DNA from: Basidiobolus meristosporus CBS 931.73
Lineage: Eukaryota > Fungi > Basidiobolomycota
Direction: 5' to 3'
Assembly: GCA_002104905.1 (NCBI GenBank)
Contig: MCFE01000271.1
Location: 42,169 to 106,168, forward strand
Length of the DNA: 64,000 nt
Shown: positions 18,071 through 64,000 of the stretch, piece after piece
Numbering within the stretch: the stretch's first letter is position 1
Layout of the letters: every line of letters begins with the position of its first letter
Program-made: the position numbers and the translations under genes
Notes under the pieces: generated by a model
Database searches by the model: none
What the model saw: the letters and a program-made list of their open reading frames with translations, nothing else
Told to the model about the DNA's origin: nothing

Positions 18071-18808
18071 AATATCAAATATTGTGACTATCTCAAATCC
18101 ATGTACTCCAAGCCAGATGCTCATTTAAGAATGCAGGTGCCACTAGCAGCCCTTTGAACCAATTTGAAAAATTCCTGTTTATCAAGTTGGAAGTTAATAC
18201 CGTAAAACAAATTGTTTACAAAAAAAAAGAAACCATAATTTAGAATTGAATGCACTGACATAAAGCAATACACCATCATAAAAAAGACTGCCAATTATTG
18301 AAACCTGTAGCTCCAATAAGCTTTTTTGCCGGTCATAAAATGCTGATCTTAGTCCTTACAAGAGGCCCAAACTGATAAACACATTTCAATCGCAACCATC
18401 GAATCCAGATGTACAGTTATTACTATAATTCTACAATTCATATTAAATTGACGATTAATATTACTTTTAATACTTGAATTTCTTCAATGGATAATATCAG
18501 GAAGAAGTCAGATGATCATGTCAAAATTAGCAATTGCACTCTAAGCTCTGATGCTTGTTGGAAGTACTATGCTTATGGAATCATTGCTGACATACAACGA
18601 AATCCACCTGGGTGGAGATGGTAGTCATCCAACAACTTGCATGGAATGCTAGCAAGGCTACGTGAACAGCTAAAATAAATGGTAACAAAGAAGTTCGAAT
18701 ATCAAGAGGTTGTCGTGAACCAGGCGTACAGGAAAGACCCACGCTACTCCAATTGGTCATCTACTTATCCACCAGCTCTATGAAGTACTACCAGCGATCA
18801 GAAAGATG

Positions 18809-21502
18809 TCAATGGGTGGTCTTCTCGCTGGTGTTGCCATTCTGAAGAAGGTTGATGGCATGGATGGCACGGACAGCGGTGCGCACTTTCTCAATGTTCG
18901 AGGTGACTCGAGTATTCAGCTCCTTCTCAATCTTTCGTGCCGATAGCTTTCTGCGACGAGTGGGTGTGGGCCAGAGCTTGGCGGTAAGCTCAAATGACCA
19001 AATGCGGAACATGAACACCTTGACAAAGTCGAGCACAACAAAGTACCCAAGTGAGATGGCAATCACACTGCATCCCCATCCCCAGCCAATTGCTGTAGTG
19101 AGCCCGGGAACGCCAAACACCGAGATCAGCATGGCAAACACCTGAGTGCCGAGAATAGCAATCGTGAACGTCCAGGACGGGAGGTTCTCCCAGAAGAAGC
19201 CGCTCAAACGAGTCGAGAAGATCACGAAATGAGGACATGACGAGATGTGTAGGTACATGATGGTACCAAGCTCGTCATTCGTCACGTTAAACACGTCCCG
19301 AGCAATGAAGAAGTGGGCAAACGAGGCCCCAGTAAGGAATACCGCCAACGTGAACGACATGGTGATCAGCTGTCCGATGCGCCACTTGTCCGGCTTGGCT
19401 GAGATTTGCGCGTTGTCCACGGAGATGACCAAGGTGGCGGCATCATTCAAGACCGCAATGAAGATCAGCAGGATGGCGTCGAGCTGCCATTGGAAGATGA
19501 TGGTCACAAAGAAGAAGAACAACAGGAAGTGGATGGTGGAGGTGATACGGTACAATGCGTATGATCTCATTCGCTGGAAGATCGCTCTGGACGTGGTGAT
19601 CCCGTCGACAATGGTGGAAAGACCGGGAGCGAGGAGTACAATGTCCGATGCTGAGCGTGCCGCGTCAGTGCACCCGTGGACTGCAATCCCTACGTTTGCC
19701 TTCTTCAGTGCTGGTGCATCGTTCACTCCATCCCCGGTCATTCCGACAAGCAACCCTTGCTCCTGAAGCAACTCGACCACCCTGTACTTGTGCTCCGGAA
19801 CAACCTGGGCAAACCCGTCCGCCTTCACACATCGGCGAACAATCTCTTCCTCGGGGACATCCGCCTCCACGAGCTTCTGCGCCTCGAGAATCGCCCTTTG
19901 CATTCCCAAACGCTGCGCCACCTCCTTCGCGATGATCAGCTGGTCGCCCGTGATCATCTTCACCGAAACCCCCATCTCGTGGCACCGAGCGATGGTCGCG
20001 GCGGAGTCTGGTCGAGGTGGGTCCAACAGTGAGATCATTCCAATCAGCTCCCACTGCTCGATGTCTCCATTGATCGTCCGTGCCACGCCCAGCGCACGCA
20101 GTCCACGTCGTGCCAGACTGTTGACAGCATGGATGGCATCATCGTTCCCACCAACTAGCTTGATGATCACCTGCGGCGCCCCCTTGGCTACCTTGAACAC
20201 CTCCCCTGTCTCCTCGTTCAGGATTGTTGCTTGGGTAAGTTTGGTGACCGGGTTGAACGGCAGGAACGAGGTGGTCTTGAACCCGGGAATCTTGGTTTCC
20301 TTCTCCCCAAGACTCTGCAGCGTGTCAAGTTGTGCTCTAGCGGCTGTACGGACTGCGTACTCGATCGGGTCGTTGGCCCCTTGCTCGGCCGCCATGTACG
20401 AGTACATCAGGATATCATCGCTGGTGTAGCCCTTGCACAGCCATGGCTCATCGAACGTGAGCTCATTCAGGGTGAGTGTGCCGGTCTTGTCGGAACAAAG
20501 CACTGACACGGATGCCATCTCCTCCACCGCAGTCAACCGCTTGACGATCACCTCCTTCTTCGCGAGCTGTTTGGCGCCCACTGCCATCGTCACCGACATC
20601 ACTGTTGGAAGTCCGACCGGAATGGCCGCCACCGTGAGTACCAGTACTTGGCGCAGAATATCGAGAACGTTGTGTCCCTTGTCCTTCACCATGAGAACGA
20701 TGAAGATGATCACCACAAGGAGAATCGTCACCAACACCAGGAAGTTACCAATACGGTTGATGATCTTCTGGAAGTGCCCTTGCTCGTTGGTGTTCGACAT
20801 CAGTGTGGCTGCCCGGCCGATGAAGGTATGCTCGCCCGTCTTCGTGACAACCCCCATCTGCTGTCCCTGCTTGACGATGGAGGATGAGTATGCCGTGGCT
20901 CCCTTCCCCTTGCTCACCGGAAGCGATTCTCCTGTCAACGCTGACTGGTCGATCTGGAGATTTCCCTCCACCGGCTCGCCGTGAACCCCGATCCCGAGAA
21001 GACGGCAATCCGCTGGGACGATATCCCCGAGTCGAAGGACAATCACATCCCCAGGAACCAGGTCAACAACATCAATCTCATTCAGCTCCCCGTCTCTCCA
21101 AACTCGCGTCTTCAGCGCAAGCGTGTTCTTCAGCGCGTCCAGTGCATTCTCCGCCTTCGACTCCTCGATGAATCCGATCGCCGCATTGATGAACAACAAG
21201 GCTCCGATGATTCCGAAGTTGGCCCAATCCTGGACAACCCCCGAGAGGATCCATGCGATCTCAATCAAGTACGCGATTGCTCCAGTGAAGTACCCAAGGA
21301 ACTTCAGGAACGGGTTTTTCTTCTTCTCCGACAATTCGTTCCGCCCAAACTGCTCCAAGCGCTGAGCAACTTCAGCGGAGGTGAGACCCTTGGCCGGATC
21401 GGTGTGGAGCAGGGCTTCAAGCTCAGGAGGGATCTCTTCTGCCATCTCCTGATGCTTGTGGTCTTCAAGCTCGACTTTGTTCTTTTCTTCTTCTACCGGC
21501 AT
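18809..21502 (-). CDS. PMA1: P-type IIIA plasma-membrane H+-ATPase, copy 1 (intronless)
   Basis: 897 aa with LTGES, IPVGLP, CSDKTGTLT phosphorylation motif, KGAPQ, DPPR, MITGD and MTGDGVNDAPALKKA. Confidence 0.97.
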   Translation of the reverse strand: MPVEEEKNKVELEDHKHQEMAEEIPPELEALLHTDPAKGLTSAEVAQRLEQFGRNELSEKKKNPFLKFLGYFTGAIAYLIEIAWILSGVVQDWANFGIIGALLFINAAIGFIEESKAENALDALKNTLALKTRVWRDGELNEIDVVDLVPGDVIVLRLGDIVPADCRLLGIGVHGEPVEGNLQIDQSALTGESLPVSKGKGATAYSSSIVKQGQQMGVVTKTGEHTFIGRAATLMSNTNEQGHFQKIINRIGNFLVLVTILLVVIIFIVLMVKDKGHNVLDILRQVLVLTVAAIPVGLPTVMSVTMAVGAKQLAKKEVIVKRLTAVEEMASVSVLCSDKTGTLTLNELTFDEPWLCKGYTSDDILMYSYMAAEQGANDPIEYAVRTAARAQLDTLQSLGEKETKIPGFKTTSFLPFNPVTKLTQATILNEETGEVFKVAKGAPQVIIKLVGGNDDAIHAVNSLARRGLRALGVARTINGDIEQWELIGMISLLDPPRPDSAATIARCHEMGVSVKMITGDQLIIAKEVAQRLGMQRAILEAQKLVEADVPEEEIVRRCVKADGFAQVVPEHKYRVVELLQEQGLLVGMTGDGVNDAPALKKANVGIAVHGCTDAARSASDIVLLAPGLSTIVDGITTSRAIFQRMRSYALYRITSTIHFLLFFFFVTIIFQWQLDAILLIFIAVLNDAATLVISVDNAQISAKPDKWRIGQLITMSFTLAVFLTGASFAHFFIARDVFNVTNDELGTIMYLHISSCPHFVIFSTRLSGFFWENLPSWTFTIAILGTQVFAMLISVFGVPGLTTAIGWGWGCSVIAISLGYFVVLDFVKVFMFRIWSFELTAKLWPTPTRRRKLSARKIEKELNTRVTSNIEKVRTAVRAIHAINLLQNGNTSEKTTH

Positions 21503-24500
21503 ATTACAAGCTTTCCAAGTCTCCTAGACTAATGAATCTTTTGGATGTCCCGGATAGTGGTAGATTGTAGAGTAACGAAAATGTGAATATTCAGAAACTT
21601 GGGATTGTATTATTCAGGTAGCTCCCTACGCCCTTTATATTGCCTTGAAGATGGTCACTCCACCCTATGAATGTGACGACTGATACATGATATGCTCAAA
21701 ATTTATGAACTGATATAATTCAATGAATTACAATCAGTCTTTTTAACTTCACCTAATTTAGCTACTTCTCGCTATTGCTCGTTATGAATATCTCTCGATT
21801 TGACTTTTACCGGATATGCTACCAACATATTGTTCATTTCTAGACTGAGTGGAATTCATGTTTTCCATTTGGTCGAAGGTTGCACAGACATTGTAGTCCT
21901 GCAGTACCTCCACAGGCCGTCCGAGATTACTTGAAAGTGGCACCCAAATATGGCCAAATATTCTGCCAATCTGAGCCATGAATTGAATTGCATTATTATA
22001 TTTTGGCAATAATTCTCAACAGTCTATATGTATGTCATCTATTTCCTGATGGATTATTCATTGTTCCGGGTTGGATTATCTAGACTGATATGTTTTCAAC
22101 TGGTCCGTTGGCGAGGATGTTCACTGTTATGTAGTGTCCTTTATGTGCACCAAATATTTTACCGGAAAGTATACTGTTTTATCAGAGCATCAAATCTAAG
22201 TATAGTATGTTATGCTCTAGAACTTACACTTGTTTCATGGTACTCACGATCATACACGATGGAGATCTCTGAGAACTCCAATCTGAGTATTCATGAATAT
22301 TACATAACGTTTGATTTATTAAACAAAATCGTTGAAGAGGAAACAACTTGGAATGTTGAAAATTACTAAATATAGTGATTTAATCATGCTACTGGTCTAT
22401 GTTTGCCTTATCCGTAATATTTCTTCCAATATGACTCTGGCACGCATCGCATGTCATGATGTTAAAGCAAGTGCAATCACTTCCACAGCTCGATAAAAGT
22501 CTAGGCCAAACCCTGGCAGAAATGAAGTTTGTGGTTGCAAATTCCGGATATATCCATGATATTGTTGCGATATTAGGTATAACCGTAGCAATCTTCGCAT
22601 CTTGAAAGAAAAGAGCGTCTGCTTAGTAGCGATAAGGGACTAGCTTTAAGGTTGTAAGCTTAATAAAATCCAAAGTTTCTTTAAGTTCTCGCGAATGAAA
22701 AGTTTTTATTTCTAGTGACTTTCTTCGGCGAATTGAGCTGGGCAGAACTAAATATCCGGTTGGTCAGAAAGAATGAATCAGCGACTTGATTCTCAGCTCA
22801 CAGATCCCCGGGCAGGTTAATATTCTCAGCAGCAAAGCCACAGACTCATGATCACTGAAACTAGAAAGTCGCACTAGTCGGCTATTCCTTATTCCTTTAC
22901 AAATCACTTCACGCAATGCGCTAACCTGAGTCATGGATATATGCTAAGGTTGACATCATTCAGTTAGTAATATTACTGTATGGCTTTTTGAACAGCTTTC
23001 GGATTGAGGATCTTTTCAAGTGCTCAATAACAAGTGCCATCCAAAGAATATAGTCACAAGCAATGGCCCATGTACATATATTCAAGCCAAGACCCACAAT
23101 ACAAGCGAGGGTATATTCAATCCATTATCAAGTATCGCAAACGTGGTATATTTTATACCTATAATAGGTAGTGGATCGATTGGATTTTACCTTAGCCTTC
23201 CTTTTACTCTGACTCAGTTTCGTCAGTATACTTGGTCCACTCGTGATATGCATATGCTTCACTATTGGAACAAACATTCCATAAGGGAGCACAAGGAGAT
23301 ATATCCAAATATCGCATGTTCCTGACTAATATACTGATGCTTCTAGACCCGAAAATTCTTGTCATTAATTTTGAACAGCTGGGTTGAAGTGGCGAGTTTA
23401 ATATAGTCATATGTATACTAGATATTGAAGATACGCTCCATGTGTCAAATCATGTGACAAATGAATGTATTTGCACATCGGGCACAGCCTTCACCAGTCA
23501 CAACAGATTACCAACGTCATAAGGAACTAGATGTAGTGGTCTGTACGACATTCAAGTCCCTTGACTCTGAACCAATGCATTGTTGCAAAAGGAACAGCTG
23601 GAAATTGCTGAAATATTGTTTAATATTATATCATATATGCGGCGTGCCTCAGAAGCAAGCGGATATGCCTACTACCAAATTCTCTAATATCAACTCTCGT
23701 GTCAATTGATCACCAAGTTGATCTCTACACCCTGAACTAAACACCCCTTCTACCTTCCATGCCAAACAGTTAGTCAAACCCAGACACTCGTGGATGCGAA
23801 ACTTGTCGGTTCCCAAATGTATGTATACATAATGACAGTCCTGGTAATCCTCTCGTCTATTTTAGAAACTAGGGCTTCACCTGGCCAAACCAATGATCAC
23901 TTACAACACAGGGCCATGTGGAGGCCTTTCTCATACCATGACCAAATTCAACTAGCATGAATTTTAGATTCGTTTAGATAACGTAAGTATATGTCCAATG
24001 AATAGGCACCTCAACGCCTTCGTTGTATTCCTGATTTAGATTAATCAATCCACATCTGTCGGCCATTCTCCGCCGAAAATTACTATATATCTATGCACAA
24101 TGTTCCATAAAGCTTCTGCAACCGGAATACCATATATCGAGCTATTCGGTTTGTATCATAACTAAACGTAGTATTCCGGATTATAGTCCTCGAAATCGCC
24201 ATGATGATCGATCTCAACATTTTTGTGCTTGCACATGACAATTCATTTCTCTACGGATTTGCCAGAGTATATATACATAGATGGCCTAATTCTGATATTC
24301 TACCAATGAATGCTCGAACTCTTAAGGATGGCCTTTGTTTGCTAGTCGGATCATTACTTGCCGTTCAGGGTAGCGGATTCTTATTACTAAATAAGAATAC
24401 TTGTGAATATGAAAGCAACCACAGTTGTCAGTAGGCATGTGGTATCTTGTGCTTCAAAGGTTTAACCATTCTTAACGGTTGACTCCACCATCATCATCAA

Positions 24501-25658
24501 TGGAGTCATATGGCATTGCACCTCAAAATTTTGATAACTGTTACATCATGGAGTGTGAGGCTCCAAATCACATTTGTGCTGTACAGTAGCTAGGTGTACG
24601 CCCAGAGCAAGAATTATCTGATTGACTGTTGTGGTATTAATTAATTTTAAGCACGAGGTTATTTCGAGCTTCTAATTTGTATAGCCGTTGATTTGCCGTT
24701 TTACGGTCGCCACAATTTGTTTGTGAATGCTACGGATCGCATTTTTCTTCAGGGTATATGTGAAGTTGGGTATCTGAATAAGGAAATAAGTCCTTGAAGT
24801 TTAGCCATTGGGATGCAGAGTTATCTAAGTAAACAGCCTGGCATTTAAGCTTATTTGATTGAAGGTTATTGCAACTTGACTGTTATTTTTGTTGAATATT
24901 CATTATTTCCCTAATGCGCAATGCAAGTTCTATGGATGGCTTGCTCCCTTGCCGTTTGATAGCGTTGATAACCCTTTCCGGCTTGCCAACCTGTTCACAT
25001 CAAAAAATCACAAGGCACTCCTGATGTAACAGTTGTGTTAAATGGAAGTTGACTTCCAAGAGGAACACGCTAAGAGGAGTCATCAACGGATGTAGATTGC
25101 CGAATTTGCCTACCAAAATGTTAATACTAATTAGGCTCCGGCAGGGTAAATAATGGTAGATTAATATGGATCTAGTAAGTATGAAAAGCTTTATCACGTA
25201 CGGTTTTCAATCATGCAAATTTGCCATCCAACGATTGTGCAACCGCTTCCCTATAATCTATTCGATTCCAGCATACCAATGCACGTAAGTCGAATGATGA
25301 ATCGAATTCAATAAGTGATAGATAATTTGACGCCGTTTGCAATATGGAGTGATGGGAAAACCATGCTGGAGAGAAGAACCAAAAGGGTGACCAACTAGAT
25401 CTAAATAGATCTCATCTAATTTCCTCATATATTTGAGATCCTGAGTATTGTAAAGGAGAGTACGCAAAACGGTTTGATGCAAAGTACAGCGACATCGATA
25501 CATCCCAAAATATCTGGCCTTAGCAGGTATAAAAGTACATTCTCCAGCCCGAATTTGAATGTACTCAGTTATTTCCTCTCAGCATCTGAAAATCTACCTT
25601 TCCTAAGGTACTAACACTAACCCTAGCCTATACCAAGCATTCTTATACGTGTAAAACC

Positions 25659-28352
25659 ATGTCCGTAGAAGAAGAAAAGAACAAAGTCGAGCTTGAAGAC
25701 CACAAGCATCAGGAGATGGCAGAAGAGATCCCTCCTGAGCTTGAAGCCCTGCTCCACACCGATCCGGCCAAGGGTCTCACCTCCGCTGAAGTTGCTCAGC
25801 GCTTGGAGCAGTTTGGGCGGAACGAATTGTCGGAGAAGAAGAAAAACCCGTTCCTGAAGTTCCTTGGGTACTTCACTGGAGCAATCGCGTACTTGATTGA
25901 GATCGCATGGATCCTCTCGGGGGTTGTCCAGGATTGGGCCAACTTCGGAATCATCGGAGCCTTGTTGTTCATCAATGCGGCGATCGGATTCATCGAGGAG
26001 TCGAAGGCGGAGAATGCACTGGACGCGCTGAAGAACACGCTTGCGCTGAAGACGCGAGTTTGGAGAGACGGGGAGCTGAATGAGATTGATGTTGTTGACC
26101 TGGTTCCTGGGGATGTGATTGTCCTTCGACTCGGGGATATCGTCCCAGCGGATTGCCGTCTTCTCGGGATCGGGGTCCACGGCGAGCCGGTGGAGGGAAA
26201 TCTCCAGATCGACCAGTCAGCGTTGACAGGAGAATCGCTTCCGGTGAGCAAGGGGAAGGGAGCCACGGCATACTCATCCTCCATCGTCAAGCAGGGACAG
26301 CAGATGGGGGTTGTCACGAAGACGGGCGAGCATACCTTCATCGGCCGGGCAGCCACACTGATGTCAAACACCAACGAGCAAGGGCACTTCCAGAAGATCA
26401 TCAACCGTATTGGTAACTTCCTGGTGTTGGTGACGATTCTCCTTGTGGTGATCATCTTCATCGTTCTCATGGTGAAGGACAAGGGACACAACGTTCTCGA
26501 TATTCTGCGCCAAGTACTGGTACTCACGGTGGCGGCCATTCCGGTCGGACTTCCAACAGTGATGTCGGTGACGATGGCAGTGGGCGCCAAACAGCTCGCG
26601 AAGAAGGAGGTGATCGTCAAGCGGTTGACTGCGGTGGAGGAGATGGCATCCGTGTCAGTGCTTTGTTCCGACAAGACCGGCACACTCACCCTGAATGAGC
26701 TCACGTTCGATGAGCCATGGCTGTGCAAGGGCTACACCAGCGATGATATCCTGATGTACTCGTACATGGCGGCCGAGCAAGGGGCCAACGACCCGATCGA
26801 GTATGCAGTCCGTACAGCCGCTAGAGCACAACTTGACACGCTGCAGAGTCTTGGGGAGAAGGAAACCAAGATTCCCGGGTTCAAGACCACCTCGTTCCTG
26901 CCGTTCAACCCGGTCACCAAACTTACCCAAGCAACAATCCTGAACGAGGAGACAGGGGAGGTGTTCAAGGTAGCCAAGGGGGCGCCGCAGGTGATCATCA
27001 AGCTAGTTGGTGGGAACGATGATGCCATCCATGCTGTCAACAGTCTGGCACGACGTGGACTGCGTGCGCTGGGCGTGGCACGGACGATCAATGGAGACAT
27101 CGAGCAGTGGGAGCTGATTGGAATGATCTCACTGTTGGACCCACCTCGACCAGACTCCGCCGCGACCATCGCTCGGTGCCACGAGATGGGGGTTTCGGTG
27201 AAGATGATCACGGGCGACCAGCTGATCATCGCGAAGGAGGTGGCGCAGCGTTTGGGAATGCAAAGGGCAATTCTCGAGGCGCAGAAGCTCGTGGAGGCGG
27301 ATGTCCCCGAGGAGGAGATTGTTCGCCGATGTGTGAAGGCGGACGGGTTTGCCCAGGTTGTTCCGGAGCACAAGTACAGGGTGGTCGAGTTGCTTCAGGA
27401 GCAAGGGTTGCTTGTCGGAATGACCGGGGATGGAGTGAACGATGCACCAGCACTGAAGAAGGCAAACGTAGGGATTGCAGTCCACGGGTGCACTGACGCG
27501 GCACGCTCAGCATCGGACATTGTACTCCTCGCTCCCGGTCTTTCCACCATTGTCGACGGGATCACCACGTCCAGAGCGATCTTCCAGCGAATGAGATCAT
27601 ACGCATTGTACCGTATCACCTCCACCATCCACTTCCTGTTGTTCTTCTTCTTTGTGACCATCATCTTCCAATGGCAGCTCGACGCCATCCTGCTGATCTT
27701 CATTGCGGTCTTGAATGATGCCGCCACCTTGGTTATCTCCGTGGACAACGCGCAAATCTCAGCCAAGCCGGACAAGTGGCGCATCGGACAGCTGATCACC
27801 ATGTCGTTCACGTTGGCGGTATTCCTTACTGGGGCCTCGTTTGCCCACTTCTTCATTGCTCGGGACGTGTTTAACGTGACGAATGACGAGCTTGGTACCA
27901 TCATGTACCTACACATCTCGTCATGTCCTCATTTCGTGATCTTCTCGACTCGTTTGAGCGGCTTCTTCTGGGAGAACCTCCCGTCCTGGACGTTCACGAT
28001 TGCTATTCTCGGCACTCAGGTGTTTGCCATGCTGATCTCGGTGTTTGGCGTTCCCGGGCTCACTACAGCAATTGGCTGGGGATGGGGATGCAGTGTGATT
28101 GCCATCTCACTTGGGTACTTTGTTGTGCTCGACTTTGTCAAGGTGTTCATGTTCCGCATTTGGTCATTTGAGCTTACCGCTAAGCTCTGGCCCACACCCA
28201 CTCGTCGCAGAAAGCTATCGGCACGAAAGATTGAGAAGGAGCTGAATACGCGAGTCACCTCGAACATTGAGAAAGTGCGCACCGCTGTCCGTGCCATCCA
28301 TGCCATCAACCTTCTTCAGAATGGCAACACCAGCGAGAAGACCACCCATTGA
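25659..28352 (+). CDS. PMA1: P-type IIIA plasma-membrane H+-ATPase, copy 2 (intronless)
   Basis: Same motifs as copy 1. The given translations differ only at residue 2 (Ser vs Pro). Confidence 0.97.
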   Translation: MSVEEEKNKVELEDHKHQEMAEEIPPELEALLHTDPAKGLTSAEVAQRLEQFGRNELSEKKKNPFLKFLGYFTGAIAYLIEIAWILSGVVQDWANFGIIGALLFINAAIGFIEESKAENALDALKNTLALKTRVWRDGELNEIDVVDLVPGDVIVLRLGDIVPADCRLLGIGVHGEPVEGNLQIDQSALTGESLPVSKGKGATAYSSSIVKQGQQMGVVTKTGEHTFIGRAATLMSNTNEQGHFQKIINRIGNFLVLVTILLVVIIFIVLMVKDKGHNVLDILRQVLVLTVAAIPVGLPTVMSVTMAVGAKQLAKKEVIVKRLTAVEEMASVSVLCSDKTGTLTLNELTFDEPWLCKGYTSDDILMYSYMAAEQGANDPIEYAVRTAARAQLDTLQSLGEKETKIPGFKTTSFLPFNPVTKLTQATILNEETGEVFKVAKGAPQVIIKLVGGNDDAIHAVNSLARRGLRALGVARTINGDIEQWELIGMISLLDPPRPDSAATIARCHEMGVSVKMITGDQLIIAKEVAQRLGMQRAILEAQKLVEADVPEEEIVRRCVKADGFAQVVPEHKYRVVELLQEQGLLVGMTGDGVNDAPALKKANVGIAVHGCTDAARSASDIVLLAPGLSTIVDGITTSRAIFQRMRSYALYRITSTIHFLLFFFFVTIIFQWQLDAILLIFIAVLNDAATLVISVDNAQISAKPDKWRIGQLITMSFTLAVFLTGASFAHFFIARDVFNVTNDELGTIMYLHISSCPHFVIFSTRLSGFFWENLPSWTFTIAILGTQVFAMLISVFGVPGLTTAIGWGWGCSVIAISLGYFVVLDFVKVFMFRIWSFELTAKLWPTPTRRRKLSARKIEKELNTRVTSNIEKVRTAVRAIHAINLLQNGNTSEKTTH

Positions 28353-28984
28353 CATCTTTCTGATCGCTGGTAGTACTTCATAGAGCTGGTGGATAAGTAG
28401 ATGACCAATTGGAGTAGCGTGGGTCTTTCCTGTACGCCTGGTTCACGGCAACCTCTTGATATTCGAACTTCTTTGTTACCATTTATTTTAGCTGTTCATA
28501 TAGCCTTGCTAGCATTCCATGCAAGTTGTTGGATGACTACCATCTCCACCCAGGTGGATTTCGTTGTATGTCAGCAATGATTCCATAAGCATAGTACTTC
28601 CACCAAGCATCAGAGCTTAGAGTGCAATTGCTAATTTTGACATGATCATCTGACTTCTTCCTGATATTGCTCATTAAATAAAGACATAATGTTAGACCTC
28701 TCAAGATTTTTTCAGAGTTCATAATGAATGGAATAAACAATCATATTTGGCTGTTACCACACCATATCTATTTTACGAGTACATTTATAGCACGCTTTAC
28801 AGTCCGTTGAGAACTTAAATGGTTGTAAATAGTATGATTTAAGTCGCTCCCTACCGTTGTTTACCTACGGATTTGACAATAGCGTATTACATAGTATGTC
28901 TATTTATTGGATGGTTGTCATGAAATTATACATCAGTTTGCTCCCTGCATATATGGCCAGTTAGTTTTAGATTTGTGAAAGATT

Positions 28985-30598: not shown

Positions 30599-31918
30599 TT
30601 TGACTATGGTATACTTGAAGTGAAAATCGTAAAGCGATAGTAATTAGAAGTGTATGTGAGTGAGCTACGTTCCCAGAATGTACAAAATCCCTCAGAAACC
30701 CGGAAGACCTGATGATAACACACCACGGATTTAGCTGGAAATTTTGTTGTTTTTTATGTAATCAACGGAAATGGCTGGATCTCATTTGTGGATTGCGTTG
30801 GCCTAAACCAAACAAAAACAACCGATTACGGATGCAACTGGTAGAGATTCGTTCCATGTATTTAGAACACAAAATGATCAGGAAAATCACCACTGACCAG
30901 AATAACATTAGGTTGGTATAATTTAGTAACCAGGACAACAGTAACGGTTTAGCACTATCATAATTGTTTCAAACTGTCTAGACTGCACTGGAAGGTAATA
31001 GTGACATACTTTTGGGTGGCTGCACAAGAATCGACAATGCCGATTTCTATTTCTTCACAATAGGACTTCTATTGCGATTCTATGGTTATCGGGTTGTCAA
31101 CAATCAATATATGAGTTTAGCGAGGGTTTGTTTCTGGGGGAATGCCTAAAAACGAGCACCGCTCGATGCCATTTCTAATAAGGTCATAAAGCTAGACCGC
31201 ATTACAGAGACATATTTCCAATGCTAATGAGTGTTGGCAATAGACATTTGATGCTCCGAACTAGGAGAGCCCAGGGTGAACACCACCCGGGCTCTTTTCA
31301 ACACCAGCCCCCTGCTAGGTTCTAGATGATTTGTTGTTTCTGGTGACTCTCCAATGACATTACGTTCGAATGGAAAATAAATGGACCATTTGCCAACGAA
31401 GAAATCACCACCAAAAGAATTAATTACAATGCAATTAGTGGAGGATTGGCATTGATCAATAGAGCGATTGTACTTGCTTTGCTTTTCACCAGTTAATCGA
31501 AATCCCTTGAAACACTAGGAGATATTCAACTCCCAATCAAGTCCAGGGAAATGATATTTGGAATTTCTAACACCCGAAGAATAATCGACTCATTTCCACG
31601 ATTTATTGCTTTATGGTATGGCTTGTATTTGGGCTGTATTATTGAGAAGTATATATCGCCAATAGGATATTGCACTTTGACTTCCAATGCAATAGCCAGC
31701 TTGTGAGCAAGCATTACTACTTCATCAAATTTAATCCTCTAACCAATCTCTTGTTGCAGTTTTAATGACTTATTCGTGGAATACTCGGTGCCTAAATCAC
31801 CACGAAGTTAGCCGGGACTCTAGTAAATATATAAAGTCTCACGCTAGCCATCATTCTATAAGCGGCTCAAAGCAATATCTACACCCTTTCGTAGCAAGTT
31901 AACTTCTAGAGCTCAGTA

Positions 31919-32887
31919 ATGCGCTTCTTTTCGGTGATCATCACAACAGTCATGTTGATAAATATTTTGCAAACCGAGGCAGTTAAATTTCCGTATTGCA
32001 AGAATCAGTACGCGATAACTAGTGCTCATTGCCAATTTCTTCGGCAATATCCTAAAAATAACCGCAATTACGAGAAAAGAATCAAGCAACTCTCGGTGGT
32101 TGATTTAGATCCCAAACCAAAGCTCATAGCCAAGATGATGACCAATGTATTTGAATATGGCACTACAACGTTTGGCTATGCTACCTGTGATAAGCTTGGT
32201 GATGGTCGCGGATATACATGTGGGCTTGTTGGCTTCACTACCGGCACAAACGACGCGCTGGCTGTTGTCGCGGAATACAACAAAATTAAACCGAACTCAG
32301 AGCTGGCCAAATTCATCCCTGAGCTAACTCGTATAAGCAAGTTAGATTGGAGCAGTAGTGGACGTGATGATACTAGTAAACTGGGAGGCTTTACGGATGC
32401 CTGGAAGAAGGTAAGCTGCTCAGATCCGGACTTCCGTGCAGTTCAGGATAAAGTGGCCGATCAGATGTACCTTATTCCAGGCCTCCAGCTAGGCGAGGCC
32501 GCTGGAATAAGTACGAACCTAGGTAAAGCCATCATGTATGATACTGCCGTTCAGCATGGGTGGGAAGAGGATGATGGTATCAGTCTACTCACCATCCTCA
32601 ACTTTGTTGGCCCTCCAAATGGCCGAACTGAGGCACAGTACCTTGAAGACTTTATCAAGGTTCGTTGGATTCTTCTTTGCTGCACCAAAGATAACGTGTG
32701 GCCAGCCTCTGCCGATCGGACTAGTGATTTGATGAATGTACTGAAAACTGGCAACTTCGATCTGAATCCCCCAATTGATTTGAAGGCGTATACTACGAAC
32801 ATCACTGGCAACGAAGATCCAAGCAAAGATATTAAGGGATGCAGCGCAAGTACCAGTAAGAAAAACAAGACCAGCACCAGCCATTAG
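31919..32887 (+). CDS. Secreted GH46 chitosanase (bacterial-type), intronless
   Basis: Hydrophobic signal peptide, then MTNVFEYG (catalytic Glu position), DKLGDGRGYTCGLVGFTTGT (GH46 signature with catalytic Asp), LAKFIPEL and YDTAVQHG. Confidence 0.9.
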   Translation: MRFFSVIITTVMLINILQTEAVKFPYCKNQYAITSAHCQFLRQYPKNNRNYEKRIKQLSVVDLDPKPKLIAKMMTNVFEYGTTTFGYATCDKLGDGRGYTCGLVGFTTGTNDALAVVAEYNKIKPNSELAKFIPELTRISKLDWSSSGRDDTSKLGGFTDAWKKVSCSDPDFRAVQDKVADQMYLIPGLQLGEAAGISTNLGKAIMYDTAVQHGWEEDDGISLLTILNFVGPPNGRTEAQYLEDFIKVRWILLCCTKDNVWPASADRTSDLMNVLKTGNFDLNPPIDLKAYTTNITGNEDPSKDIKGCSASTSKKNKTSTSH

Positions 32888-58005: not shown

Positions 58006-59034
58006 AATCGGTGATAGGGCTGTTTCATCATCAGCCACACATGTTGTCTATTTCAACTTCAAGTACCTTTACGAAGGATAGATAGTGCGAGATGTATCTA
58101 GCATCACAGTATACATATTAACCTAAACGCCTTACGACCTAAGCGCAATCGCATTGCGCTTATATCACACATAGTCATGAACTGTATTGTCTACTCCCGA
58201 AAGTTGGTCGTGGGGTCCATTACGTTGTTTCATTATGGTTCATAGCCTTCTCTATTATCACATTGTATATATTTATTGTCCTGGTCATTCTTATCATTAC
58301 CAATGAATTAATAACCTTTTGTATTAAAGGAAGTTTGTTGAGTCGCACATTGACGACTTCAGGTGAAATATAACATTGGCGTTGCATCCACCTTGTATGC
58401 ACTTATCATTTTACACCTTTTCTTACCAGCATCATTGTGCGTAATCTGTTCATGCATCCTCAAGCAGCGTAGATTAGCAGCAACATAAAGTATCATGAAT
58501 ATTTGTTCTTGTGTGGTATGCGTGCGAGAACACATGACCAGAAGCGATATTGCTTGAAATGCTGCATAGCAATTGGTACTGGATGCTTTAAAATTACCAT
58601 ACACTGGATAGATAGCGATTTATCATTAATGGGGTCTTATATATTTATTTTGACTGCTAGCATATAGATTTGTTTCATTGCTGTGTCTGCCACAATGCCA
58701 GCAGACCAGCCAATTTCCTGCAATACCAAATTCAACATCATATGTTCAACATTTACCTGTCCTTTGTTGCCCCACTATAGGGTTAGGGGATGAAAGCCAC
58801 CAAATGGTGAAATCTTTATTTACTTAGTACAAGTATTTAAAGAAGCCAAGTTAATCTGAAGTTGCTCCTATAAAGCTAGGTGTGAAAAATGTATTCCCAA
58901 AAAGCCAGGTCTGAGAGTTAAAGGTTAAATGGGAGACAGTCACCAACAGGTTAAATCTTTATTTCAGTTCAAATATAGAAGCTAGTACTACTGTTGTAGC
59001 TGTGATACAAGATTATGTAGCTGAGGGTAATTTG

Positions 59035-59250
59035 TGTTGAGAATTTTGTAATCACACCTAAATATTCATCCGTCTTGATCACTTAGATCATTGCCTACAA
59101 ATCTTGGAGAATTCTGACCAAGTTTCTTGTTGGGATTTACTTGGATTATTTTCACCAAGACATCAGTTACCCAGAACAGGAGTTTTGATAAGCTGTCCAA
59201 ACAGTCTTAAACTTTGCACACATGCTGTTAGGATCTTCCTGAGTATTTTC
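59035..59250 (+). mobile_element. Diverged family-X LTR fragment inserted in array unit 2
   Basis: Starts TGTTGAGAATTTTGTAATCACACCTAAATATTC and aligns with roughly the first 210 bp of 60823-61173. Confidence 0.75.
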
Positions 59251-59498
59251 TGCTGTAAGAGTCTTGGAGATATTGGAAGTGATTTGGAGAACGAGTAAAT
59301 TATGTGGTTTTCACTTGATGATTTATTGAATGTAAAAGTAGTATTTATACTTTTACATGGTCTTGGCATTACAAACTTGTAGAATAGGTTAAGAAAGGTC
59401 CCAAGTACATATGTGCAAAGTTTGGGGCTGTTTGGACAACTTTGAGAATTTTCATGTTCTGGGTACCAGGTATTTTGGTGAAAAAATTCTAAGTAAAT
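59251..59498 (-). mobile_element. Young family-X LTR, truncated on its telomere-facing side
   Basis: Starts TGCTGTAAGAGTCTTGG as in 49124. Similarity stops abruptly at AAGTAAAT (59498), followed by TAGGGG and array unit 3. Confidence 0.85.
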
Positions 59499-60408
59499 TA
59501 GGGGAGGGAAAGTCACCAAAGTAGGTGAAATCTTTATTTGATTTCAGACAAATCTAACTACAAATAAAGAAGCCAGCTGGGAATAGAAGATTCCCAAAGT
59601 AAAAACCAAGTTGAATATGAATAAACCTAAGCTAAAGTTAAGGCAGTATCCCAGAGTACACTGGAGTTCAGGTTCATGGGGGAGTGAAGTAGATAAGCTT
59701 GAGAGATATAATATTCTTTCAGGAAGTGGGTAACAGCAGGTGAAGGGGAATTTTTGATAAGTGAAGTTAAGGGGATGACAATCACCACAGGGTGAAATCT
59801 TTATTTAAATTGTAAATAAAGAAGCCAAGTTTGAATATGAATATTTGAGATGCAGAAAGCCTACAAGATAAACTTGGACTTTGCTGTATCCCAGATATCC
59901 TCAATATCAAAGTTTAGAGGAGAATGTAGCAAAACTGCTTGTTCACTGTAGTATTTCTTGAGGAAGTTTGTGACTTGAAGGGAAGGAGAGTTTTTCAACA
60001 AGCTGGTAAACCTTTTGAGGAGTTCTTTTTCCAGAGAGAATGGTACAAAGAGTGGAATGTCTAAATGATGTCTGAATATATGCTCTGAGAGCTCCCAATC
60101 CAGCATATTTTAGGGTTAGGGGGGGAGACAGTCACCAACAGGTGAAATCTTTATTTCAGTTGAAACAAAGAAGCCAGTGCTACTGTTGTAGCTTTGATAC
60201 AAGAGTGTGTAGCTGAGGGGAATTTGTAGGTAAGTTAATAAGAAGTGATGATAGTTCTTCAGTGCTCAAGACACTGTTCAGTGGGAAGGGGGGTAGCAAG
60301 AGAGGTAAGAATGACTTGTGAACAACATTAATAAGGGGAATTTAGGGGGGGGGGAGACAGTCACCAACAGGTGAAATCTTTATTTCAGTTGAAACAAAGA
60401 AGCCAGCG

Positions 60409-62987
60409 CTACTGTTGTAGCTTTGATACAAGAGTGTGTAGCTGAGGGGAATTTGTAGGTAAGTTAATAAGAAGTGATGATAGTTCTTCAGTGCTAAACA
60501 CACTGTTCAGTGGGAAGGGGGGTAGCAAGAGAGGTAAGAATGACTTGTGAACAACATTAATGAGGGGAATGTGATAAGGATTGATATTCATCATAAAGGG
60601 AGTGTGCTGCTGCAGATATTGCTGCCAAAGGTCTGTCAAGTACATCAGGTAGGCCAGCTTGGGTTTTTCTGACTGCAGAATATAGTGAGCAAACTTCTTG
60701 ACTTCAGGATCTCCAAGTATAGTTCTCCAGCAGGAGTCAGGTGTTGTGTGGTGTGTTCTCTTCCAGGCCTTAATCAGTGGGTTGTTGCAGTTGTGAAGTC
60801 TGAGATATAATCTGGTTCTAAGTGTTGTAAAAATTCGTATTTTCCACCTAAATATTCACCTAACTTAGTCACTTAGATCATCACCTTCAAATCCTAGAGA
60901 ATACTGACCAAATTCCTTGTCGGGATTTACTTAGAATATTTTCACCAAAAATACCAGGTACCCAGAACATGAAAATTCTCAAAGTTGTCCAAACAGCCCC
61001 AAACTTTGCACACATGTTCTTGGGACCTTCCTTAACCTATTCTACGTGTTTGTAATGCCAAGACCATGTAAAAGTATAAATACTACTTTTACATTCAATA
61101 AATCATTAAGTGAAAACCACATAATCTACTTGTTCTCCCAATCACTTCCAATATCTCCAAGACTCTTACAACACTAAGGTAGAGAAGTCTGATCTTATAG
61201 GGCATAAACCCAAAAGCACCAAGAATAGCATGTCTGTAGGGGCATTCAGGCAAATGAGGCACCAAGGAGGTAATGCACCATACTGCAAACTTGTCAAGCT
61301 TAGTGCAGTCTCTAGAAGTAAGAGAGAGAAGTGGTAAGCCAAATTCCAGGGCAGGGAAGACAAACTGCTTGAGTAGAAGGAGGCAGCTGGGAGCTAAAGT
61401 TGTAGGAGGAGTAACAGCCAGTAGTTTGTGGAGTGCCTGTCTTGCCAGGATAATTCTCTTCTTCAGGTGTGCTCCAGAGTCTAGTCCAGTAGGAAGGAAA
61501 GGAAAGCCAAGATATGTAGCAGAAACCTGAGCAGGTAGAGTGGAGTTCTCCAAGTTGATAGGAGAGCCCAAAGGTACTGTCTTTGCAATGGAAAGCTGGA
61601 GATTATTCTTCTGCAGATACTGCTGGATGGTCTGGGAGTCTTGTTGCACATTGGAGGAGGATATTCTGATGTCATCAGCAAAGAGAGTAACCAGGCAGTC
61701 AGCTGAGAGTCTTGGGAAATCATTCAGGAAGATGGCAAACAGTATAGGACCAAGCACAGAGCCTTGAACCACTCCATTAGGAACTGAGAACACAGCTGAT
61801 TGCTCACTTGGGTGCAGAATTCTTGCTTGTGGATCCAGAAACAGAGACCTGACAAGGAGGGTGAGAGAGGTACTGGAGAAGCATTGCAACTTGGACCAAA
61901 GCAGATTTCTGTCAACTGAATCAAAGGCCTTAGTAATATCAAACAGAACAGAGGGATACTTGCACTGGAGAGAGTGATCTTGGCTAAGTATGACTGCATA
62001 TTCCAAGGAGAGGCCAGGAACAAAGCCAAACTGTGCAGGATGAAACTTGAGGGAGTCAGAGTAGAGCTCCTGAGCAAGCAGAAGCTCAAACACCTTTCTG
62101 CAGGTGGGCAGCAGAGATATTGGCCTGTAGGAGCTAGGATCCAGGTGCTTTCCTTTACCCTTGTACAGTGGCAGAACATTTGCAAAGGACCATTCCTCAG
62201 GAGTAGAAAGCTGGGCTGAGCATTGCTGAAACAGTGGAAGCAGAAGTGCAGACATGGCCTTGGTACTAGTCTTCAGAAGCTCATAAGAGATTGTGTCCAC
62301 ACCTGGAGCAGTAGAGTTGGGAAGCCTCTTGAGCACATTATGGATTCTCCTTTGATCAAGTGCAAGTGGGATGGGCAGAGTCTTGAAGTCAGGATGAAAG
62401 CCAGGAGTTGAGTACTGCTTTGTAGAGAAGAAGATGTTAGCCAGCTGTTCTGTTGAAGGTAACTTCCTGGAAGAGGGCCTCATTGCCCTGTAGAGTCTTG
62501 ATACAGTTCTTGTTATAGAGTTGGAAGATTGCAGAGGCAAGGAACTCATAATATGATCCCAGAGCTGAGTATGCAGAGTGTGGTGAATTGCCTTGGAGTG
62601 GTGTATTGCTGTCAGGAGGAGTTTCTCTGTTTTTGGGTTAGGGAAACTCAGGTAGCTTTGTTGCAGGGCTGAAACAATGGATTCCCATTTTCTTGAGGTA
62701 ACAGCAGTAGTCTTGCATGGCAGTGAGAGGGAGGCAGACACCAGAATCAGATGCTTCACAAAGAGCCAGGCATAGTTGAGATCATCTGGCAGAGACAGTA
62801 GCAAACTGGCAAGCTTCAAGTAGTTCCCAAAGTCTTTCTTCTGATTCTTGGTAGCTTTGTGGGTGAGCACAGTAAGTTTTGGCAGCTTCTTCTTCACAAC
62901 TGGTTGCATAGAAAGGGACCAGGCTGGATGGTCAGAGGCTCTCAAGGATCCTAGCTCAGCTCCAGAGAATTGCTTAACTTCATTCAC
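60409..62987 (-). pseudogene. Non-LTR (LINE-type) ORF2: tail of APE endonuclease plus reverse transcriptase plus C-terminal domain; 5'-truncated, interrupted by a solo LTR
   Basis: SDH motif near the N-terminus. RT motifs APGVDTI, KGKGK..DPSSYRPISLL, QFGF, FDITKAFDSV, QGSVLGPILF, FADD and YLG. No ATG, and the frame is open up to the junction at ~62995. Removing 60823-61173 plus one TSD gives a continuous frame (LYL-RTRLYLR) to TAG at 60409. Confidence 0.92.
60823..61173 (+). mobile_element. Solo LTR, family X (351 bp), inserted in the LINE ORF
   Basis: TGTTGTAA...TTACAACA terminal inverted repeats and TSD CTAAG (60818-60822 and 61174-61178). Internal TATAAATA and AATAAA in + orientation. Confidence 0.95.
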
Positions 62988-63777
62988 AAAGTAGAGGGGG
63001 GGAGACAGTCACCAACAGGTGAAATCTTTATTTCAGCTGAAACAAAGAAGCCAGCACTACTGTTGTAGCTTTGATACAAGAGTGTGTAGCTGAGGGGAAT
63101 TTGTAGGTAAGTTAATAAGAAGTGATGATAGTTCTTCAGTGCTCAAGACACTGTTCAGTGGGAAGGGGGGTAGCAAGAGAGGTAAGAATGACTTGTGAAC
63201 AACATTAATGAGGGGAATTTAGGGGGGGGGGGAGACAGTCACCAACAGGTGAAATCTTTATTTCAGTTGAAACAAAGAAGCCAGCGCTACTGTTGTAGCT
63301 TTGATACAAGAGTGTGTAGCTGAGGGGAATTTGTAGGTAAGTTAATAAGAAGTGATGATAGTTCTTCAGTGCTAAACACACTTAGGGGGAGACAGTCACC
63401 AACAGGTGAAATCTTTATTTCAGTTGAAACAAAGAAGCCAGCGCTACTGTTGTAGCTTTGATACAAGAGTGTGGAGCTGAGGGGAATTTGTAGGTAAGTT
63501 AATAAGAAGTGATGATAGTTCTTCAGTGCTCAAGACACTGTTCAGTGGGAGGGGGGGTAGCAAGAGAGGTAAGAATGACTTGTGAACAACATTAATGAGG
63601 GGAATGTGATAAGGATTGATATTCATCATAAAGGGAGTGTGCTGCTGCAGATATTGCTGCCAAAGGTCTGTCAAGTACTTCAGGTAGGCCAGCTTGGGTT
63701 TTTCTGACTGCAGAATATAGTGAGCAAACTTCTTGACTTCAGGATCTCCAAGTATAGTTCTCCAGCAGGAGTCAGGT

Positions 63778-64000
63778 GGGTTAGGGTTAGGGTTAGGGTT
63801 AGGGTTAGGGTTAGGGTTAGGTTAGGGTTAGGGTTAGGGTTAGGGTTAGGGTTAGGGTTAGGGTTAGGGTTAGGGTTAGGGTTAGGGTTAGGGTTAGGGT
63901 TAGGGTTAGGGTTAGGGTTAGGGTTAGGGTTAGGGTTAGGGTTAGGGTTAGGGTTAGGGTTAGGGTTAGGGTTAGGGTTAGGGTTAGGGTTAGGGTTAGG
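63778..64000 (+). repeat. Telomeric repeat (TTAGGG)n, right chromosome end
   Basis: About 37 tandem TTAGGG units running to the window end, with one TTAGG variant at 63817-63821. Confidence 0.99.

Follow-up and report, generated by a model that had tools for sequence, protein, structure and literature searches.

Near the end of a 64,000-nucleotide stretch of the Basidiobolus meristosporus CBS 931.73 genome (contig MCFE01000271.1, positions 42,169 to 106,168; hereafter "the window"), next to a telomere tract, lies a truncated long interspersed nuclear element (LINE) at 60409–62995, whose coding parts lack the dinucleotide CpG altogether. Comparison with related elements shows that the CpG-free state is a property of a functional lineage under purifying selection. 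The reading we consider the most probable (roughly 0.7) is that CpG-directed hypermutation of transposons, probably acting through 5-methylcytosine (5mC), was filtered by purifying selection, and that the stretch in the window is a dead copy which inherited the CpG-free state.

A preliminary description of the window had noted by eye that CG is missing from 61174–62995 and 60409–60822, where dozens would be expected, and had concluded that arginine must be encoded by AGA and AGG only. Counting bears this out: there are 0 CpG versus 95.0 expected from base composition (GC content 46.8%) in the former segment and 0 versus 16.7 in the latter, and all 25 arginine codons of the window's open reading frame (ORF) are AGA or AGG, none CGN. 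The Poisson probability of a zero count in 61174–62995 is about e^-95, which excludes chance. Because GpC is at expectation (observed/expected ratio, o/e, 1.0–1.16, with 1.16 in 61174–62995), the deficit is specific to CpG. The ORF is likewise devoid of NCG codons and of C|G codon boundaries, of which 34 would be expected. The 351-bp insert at 60823–61173, said earlier to keep three CpGs, does so (o/e 0.34). Throughout the blocks at 59–64 kb and 14–18 kb, the per-kb CpG o/e stays below 0.17, compared to ~0.5–1.05 elsewhere in the window, with the 59–64 kb block as a whole falling short of 0.08, and the limits of the CpG loss coincide with repeat boundaries. In the telomeric array, o/e is 0.00–0.04 for CG, 0.96–1.16 for GC and 1.1–1.55 for TG and CA, with the TG excess being larger than the CA excess on the sense strand of the LINE, while TpA is not elevated (0.61–0.73). 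Host frames of the window (P-type ATPase, kinase, GH46) contain CpG near expectation in all three codon contexts and use CGN for ~70% of their arginines; the earlier statement that host genes of the window are CpG-rich therefore holds, with an o/e of 0.91–0.92 for the ATPase.

Relatives of the element are carried on contigs from ENA and Logan, here designated by L-numbers (L011 and L012 are from B. meristosporus). The 4.9-kb contig L001 contains 0 CpG versus 238 expected over its whole length, and L002 contains 1 versus 203. In the two ORFs of each of L004 to L008, which are 99.9% identical copies of one element, 0 CpG are found versus ~178 expected. Two further relatives retain a few, again over the whole contig (L009, 18 versus 223 expected; L010, 17 versus 163). 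Both ORF1 and ORF2 are open in L001, L002, and L004, and none of the 194 arginine codons of these three and the window ORF is CGN. In full-length relatives, the untranslated regions (UTRs) lack CpG to the same degree as the coding parts, unlike the flanks. L004 and L005 carry the same full-length element (99.86% identical over 4992 bp, both ORFs open, one CpG near the 5' end) in flanks that differ on both sides, which suggests that a full-length, CpG-free element has transposed recently. Among the ~35 differences between the window copy and its copy in L011, there is no CpG transition within the ORF. These comparisons show that the CpG-free state was inherited from a master lineage rather than made in place.

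The relative in L009, full-length and otherwise CpG-poor, shows a peculiarity of its own: 12 CpGs are clustered in ~380 bp of ORF1 (849–1230). This segment might have been recombined or recently acquired.

The frames have been maintained by selection on the protein. Pairwise Nei-Gojobori comparison of the ORF2 codon alignment, a check proposed in the preliminary description, yields ratios of nonsynonymous to synonymous substitution (dN/dS) of 0.10–0.20, which are rough, since synonymous sites are at or near saturation even in the closest pair (0.63–0.78 synonymous differences per site, pS). The same saturation implies that chance must have created CpGs over and over in every lineage, yet none persists. 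What happens to arginine can be followed in the lineages that are not entirely CpG-free. L010, the most diverged lineage, has 13 CpGs in ORF2, nine of them in CGN arginine codons; six of these nine are at arginine columns that are conserved in all six lineages and are AGA or AGG in the others. Since L010 and its sister copy L012c have CGN at different conserved arginine sites, CGN and AGA/AGG must have replaced each other repeatedly while arginine itself was kept. LINE-B, a second and unrelated open-frame LINE in L011 (25% identity in the reverse transcriptase), is less far advanced, with 6 C|G boundaries versus 67 expected, 17 NCG versus 195 NCA codons, and 28 CGN among 67 arginine codons. 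The CGN share of arginine is thus graded from LINE-B (28/67) to L010 and L012c (27–30%) to the core clade (0). Deamination may be silent in an NCG codon or across a C|G boundary, but in a CGN codon it always changes the amino acid. The CpG gradient across lineages hence fits CpG hypermutation combined with purifying selection, because only changes at NCG and C|G can be silent.

The preliminary description had proposed that an active lineage was purged of CpG under selection for function. The part concerning the lineage is supported by the dN/dS values and by full-length copies elsewhere, which are not CpG-rich (0–1 CpG in L001, L002, and L004); the window copy itself, however, is not active. 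Nor are all repeats equally CpG-free, as LINE-B and a relic at 13–18 kb retain more CpG than the functional lineages. The description of this relic as CpG-poor and full of stops is borne out (o/e 0.08, no frame above 124 aa); as for its assignment to Gypsy, the longest frames of the relic (~13.5–18.2 kb) give only a weak RVT_1 match.

Traces of an ongoing process are found in sites where CpG is still present. Immediately after the stop codon of ORF2, the consensus contains a lone CpG, which in 12 copies (window, L011, and L012) reads CG in seven, CA in three, TG in one, and TA in one, while the 32 flanking bases differ by only ~1%. Because this site has mutated in 5 of 12 copies, copies still seem to be targeted by CpG mutation. 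Similarly, three of ~4 CpG sites differ by CG versus TG or CA between the long terminal repeat (LTR) in the 351-bp insert and its relative at 59251–59485. Both strands show the kind of transitions that deamination of 5mC would leave. New CpGs also arise: the L011 copy, which is young and dead, has gained two, both by transversion.

These observations can be combined into a putative sequence of events. CpGs within transposons would often mutate from C to T or from G to A, in all likelihood by deamination of 5mC set by the DNMT1 and Dim2-type enzymes of the host. Descendants would be left only by lineages with a working ORF1 and ORF2. Synonymous CpGs, i.e., those in NCG codons and at C|G boundaries, would presumably be lost first, and arginine would then shift from CGN to AGA/AGG with the protein unchanged. 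The end state would be a full-length element of ~5 kb with 0–1 CpG, in which almost nothing is left to mutate or methylate, so that the CpG-free state may protect the element. In the source data of PMC10538959, the entry for B. meristosporus comprises DNMT1, two Dim2-clade enzymes, UHRF1, and HELLS, but neither DNMT3 nor DNMT5. Of the three methyltransferases that the preliminary description had suggested looking for in the host, the literature thus lists DNMT1 and Dim2, but not DNMT5.

Several points weigh against this reading. The 5mC column is empty for B. meristosporus in the same source (PMC10538959), a literature search for 5mC or a methylome of Basidiobolus found none for the genus, and according to a 2026 review, 5mC in early-diverging fungi is close to undetectable (PMC13297926). 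The evidence for CpG transitions comes from few sites, and some of the post-stop CA variants may share descent; the saturation of synonymous sites makes the dN/dS values approximate. Moreover, with 0 CpG versus ~669 expected and 0 versus 256 at C|G boundaries, the ORFs of the core clade lie far below both the relic (o/e 0.08) and the synonymous CpG classes of LINE-B (~0.09). If the values of the relic and LINE-B represent the neutral equilibrium, the probability of 0 CpG is at most 1e-10, and mutation pressure alone therefore looks insufficient. This comparison favours a putative extra factor beyond mutation, either lineage selection against CpG or a heavier targeting of this LINE family.

The first of these options leads to the explanation that competes most seriously with mutation filtered by selection on the proteins, namely, the adaptive evasion envisaged in the preliminary description: low-CpG lineages would have been positively favoured because CpG methylation silences them, and zero CpG would be a counter-defence that hides the element from the methylation system of the host. 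Both explanations overlap and differ in the selecting agent. Evasion would account for functional lineages falling below the relic and the synonymous classes of LINE-B (with the same bound of 1e-10 under equal equilibrium), and for the recoding of every arginine in the core clade to AGA or AGG; new CpGs do arise in dead copies, as in L011. However, transitions continue to erode the last CpG, which means that the process reaches the copies; the relic could have escaped methylation and then regained CpG; and mutation pressure explains UTRs as CpG-free as the coding parts at least as well. We regard evasion as possible, but doubtful. The wider proposal that CpG shedding is a lineage-selected counter-defence of unrelated transposon classes in Basidiobolus, depriving DNMT1 and Dim2 of substrate on the most active parasites, is offered as a tentative idea that we would sooner doubt than adopt.

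A process akin to repeat-induced point mutation (RIP), i.e., homology-triggered and premeiotic, could mutate CpG in any duplicated DNA, such that only CpG-free repeats survive. The depletion lies far below the o/e of ~0.2 of mammalian genomes (a five-fold deficit, cited in PMC13297926), and Pucciniomycotina are known for RIP-like TpCpG hypermutation and for transposons with few target sites (PMC3318451; PMC4352252). Like RIP of the Neurospora type, the process in Basidiobolus could be viewed as a defence of the genome in which the cytosines of repeats are mutated. However, the CpA-to-TpA signature is missing and duplicated host genes are not mutated. The window contains an inverted duplication of 3.0 kb with 99.5% identity (18493–21502 and 25659–28668), in which both P-type ATPase frames are open and CpG is retained (190 CpG per copy, o/e 0.91), and tandem CHAP-domain genes in L012, which are 98–99.5% identical, keep an o/e of 0.8–0.87. 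With TpA not raised and CpG preserved in these duplicates, targeting looks specific to transposons or to their chromatin, and not RIP-like. New CpGs also survive in young dead copies. Canonical, homology-triggered RIP is thus improbable.

Even less credit can be given to a loss of CpG at the level of RNA or complementary DNA (cDNA), by editing of the transcript or of first-strand cDNA or by restriction of CpG-containing RNA, with chromosomal DNA unaffected. The whole transcribed unit including UTRs is CpG-free while the flanks are not, and the TG excess on the sense strand exceeds that of CA, as this model would suggest. But CG-to-TG, CG-to-CA, and the double change to TA occur at the same chromosomal site, LTR elements and relics of the same genome are CpG-poor as well, and we know of no CpG-specific RNA sensor in fungi. 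Finally, passive decay of the window copy after insertion, with a frame left open by luck, has the CpG-poor neighbouring relic in its favour and is refuted by 99% identical copies and 51–84% identical lineages that are equally CpG-free with open frames, and by the absence of CpG transitions within the ORF noted above.

The element to which the preferred reading applies is most probably an APE-type (apurinic-type endonuclease) non-LTR retrotransposon of Basidiobolus, i.e., a LINE that is jockey/CR1-like by reverse transcriptase similarity. The two ORF2 pieces on either side of the LTR were searched separately; that the frame runs on from one to the other was seen directly in the sequence. A minus-strand open frame of 630 aa (62987 to 61095) matches Pfam RVT_1 (E = 4e-26), contains a FADD box (YXDD-type), and reads into the LTR insert; the ORF2 frame is picked up again at 60822 and ends with a stop codon at 60409–60411. 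A word search gave close relatives of 664–923 aa and two named Basidiobolus meristosporus CBS 931.73 proteins, the closest relatives with a name, while the farther matches are jockey/CR1-like LINEs with apurinic-type endonuclease domains (PF03372/PF14529). The N-termini of P0002, P0004, P0005, and L002 match endonuclease families weakly, at or just below the Pfam cut-offs (Exo_endo_phos, 23.0 bits versus a cut-off of 24.5; Exo_endo_phos_2, 27.5 versus 27.4). Upstream of ORF2, an ORF1 of 434–500 aa with coiled-coil-like matches is present on L001, L002, L004, and L009. A Penelope-like identity (Athena/Coprina), which had been suggested by the 5' end facing the telomere, was rejected, since the relatives are APE-bearing LINEs and full-length members have APE-like N-termini.

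The window copy is dead but young. The B. meristosporus assembly contains an unbroken copy of 740 aa (L011:13322–15544), which is 99% identical to the upstream ORF2 piece and 94% identical, in its C-terminus, to the piece at 60409–60822. A solo LTR flanked by a 5-bp target-site duplication, CTTAG, splits ORF2 behind codon 604, and the two pieces are in frame once the LTR and one CTTAG copy are removed. The window copy lacks ORF1, and of the endonuclease domain only the end with the last motif, SDH, is kept; full-length ORF2 proteins have ~180 additional N-terminal residues in the alignment. The window copy sets in only shortly before the endonuclease domain ends and is therefore 5'-truncated. 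The "intact reverse transcriptase ORF" of the preliminary description is therefore open, but not intact: it is truncated, split by the LTR, and without ORF1. Two oddities concern related copies: in L002, an 84% identical relative, a lone in-frame stop (2217–2225) parts ORF2 into endonuclease (251 aa) and reverse transcriptase (664 aa), and in L011 the NCBI gene model P0007 (10001–12651) is a chimera of part of the LINE-B reverse transcriptase and a C-terminal fragment of the telomeric LINE.

The 5' end of the reverse transcriptase gene points to the (TTAGGG)n telomere, and the short repeat units flanking the ORF are the last ORF2 codons and 3'UTRs of more truncated copies, arranged head to tail. 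Remnants of telomere repeats (CCCTAA) occur at LINE junctions in the window, L004, L005, and L011. Every junction inspected (window 62996–63800; L004 500–530 and 5500–5530; L011 13300–13320) has the same structure of AATAAA, a short inverted repeat, and oligo-C, directly followed by CCCTAA-type remnants, which suggests that reverse transcription may be primed on the telomeric G-strand. By the arrangement of its copies, the LINE family is telomere-specific and adds itself head to tail onto telomere repeats. The window copy (62990) and the 99% identical L011 copy (13319) share an identical 5' end, TTTGTGRATGAAG..., while the DNA upstream differs, being the oligo-C of another unit in one and two telomere repeats in the other. 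The shared end could reflect a propagating sub-element that consists of the reverse transcriptase without ORF1 and endonuclease, or a preferred truncation point. The features of the array and of the comparators are compiled in the following table.

Features of the telomeric LINE array and of comparator sequences in the window
Feature	Coordinates	Strand	Remarks
Degraded retroelement relic, CpG o/e 0.08, no open frame >124 aa	13500–18200	.	
P-type (PMA1-like) ATPase gene, first arm of inverted duplication	18812–21523	-	190 CpG, o/e 0.92
P-type ATPase gene, second arm of inverted duplication	25590–28349	+	189 CpG, o/e 0.91
Older truncated 3' units of the same subfamily and of a second one, plus LTR-related fragment 59055–59485	58778–60348	-	only two CpGs, 59071 and 59292, both within the LTR-related fragment
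3'UTR with AATAAA, short inverted repeat, oligo-C end	60349–60408	-	lone subfamily-consensus CpG (60407, just after the stop)
Remainder of ORF2 (C-terminal domain) to stop codon	60409–60822	-	0 CpG
Solo LTR of an unrelated LTR retrotransposon, TGTTG...CAACA ends, CTTAG duplication	60823–61173	.	3 CpG; relative at 59251–59485, 94% identical
5'-truncated ORF2: endonuclease end (SDH) and reverse transcriptase	61174–62995	-	0 CpG; 61174–61178 is one CTTAG copy
Three extremely 5'-truncated head-to-tail LINE copies (ORF2 C-terminal codons, 3'UTR, oligo-C/CCCTAA junction)	62996–63779	-	only CpGs 63285 and 63442, the conserved post-stop site
(TTAGGG)n telomere tract, window end	63780–64000	+	terminal tract

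LINEs that target telomeres are known from other organisms, for example, TRAS/SART of Bombyx and MoTeR/FoTeR of Magnaporthe and Fusarium. Cnl1 of Cryptococcus is another telomere-targeting LINE. With these families the Basidiobolus LINE shares head-to-tail stacking on telomere repeats, 5'-truncated copies, and telomere remnants at junctions, but by its reverse transcriptase it belongs to a jockey/CR1-like APE lineage, and its 3' end is oligo-C/CCCTAA instead of poly(A). No report of CpG-free coding in any of these families is known to us, and a literature search for retrotransposons devoid of CpG found nothing relevant.

The loss of CpG has parallels as well. In mammals, methylated copies of L1 and Alu decay from CpG to TpG. 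CpG-to-TpG decay of methylated transposons is also reported from Tuber and rust fungi, where it is linked to DNMT1-class enzymes (Amselem et al., 2015, PMC4352252). Common to these cases and Basidiobolus are CpG-specific transitions in repeats, there ascribed to 5mC deamination. However, the decay in Tuber, rusts, and mammals is read as inactivating copies, whereas in Basidiobolus the functional lineage itself is at zero CpG with both genes intact. In transposons of Microbotryum and other Pucciniomycotina, RIP-like TpCpG hypermutation leaves few target sites where a change is non-synonymous (Hood et al., 2005, as cited in Horns et al., 2012, PMC3318451), and the authors of the latter work interpret the paucity of target sites as long-term co-evolution of transposons and genome defence. 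Repeat-restricted C-to-T hypermutation in CpG context is the shared feature here; in Basidiobolus, however, the target looks like any CpG rather than TpCpG, the host is a zoopagomycete-grade fungus and not a basidiomycete, and the depletion of the LINE is complete (0–1 CpG per 5 kb, every arginine recoded), with near-identical host duplicates spared. In kind, the process is that of the known fungal cases, in a different fungal lineage and carried to completion.

CpG decay driven by methylation is mostly portrayed as a way for hosts to kill transposon copies, but this LINE family has passed the filter with both genes working and nothing left to hit. It provides a natural system for the question whether recoding can free transposons from CpG methylation and from the mutations that it entails. 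Graded stages coexist in one genome, from LINE-B to L010-type lineages to the core clade, in a readable order with synonymous CpGs lost first and arginine last. The retention of DNMT1 and Dim2-type enzymes by the host adds to its value as a test system. Low measured 5mC in such fungi may in part reflect an exhausted substrate, and if CpG shedding should indeed be a counter-defence, it could help to explain why some early-diverging fungi appear to have almost no 5mC although they retain the enzymes.

Two observations concern host genes. At a B. meristosporus contig end adjoining a transposon array (L012, 10790–18266), the four tandem CHAP-domain genes are accompanied by a fifth, diverged one (~61% identical) on the opposite strand. 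In the window, the open frame at 31910–32884 has a strong match to GH46 (chitosanase), a mostly bacterial family, and may represent a horizontal acquisition in Basidiobolus.

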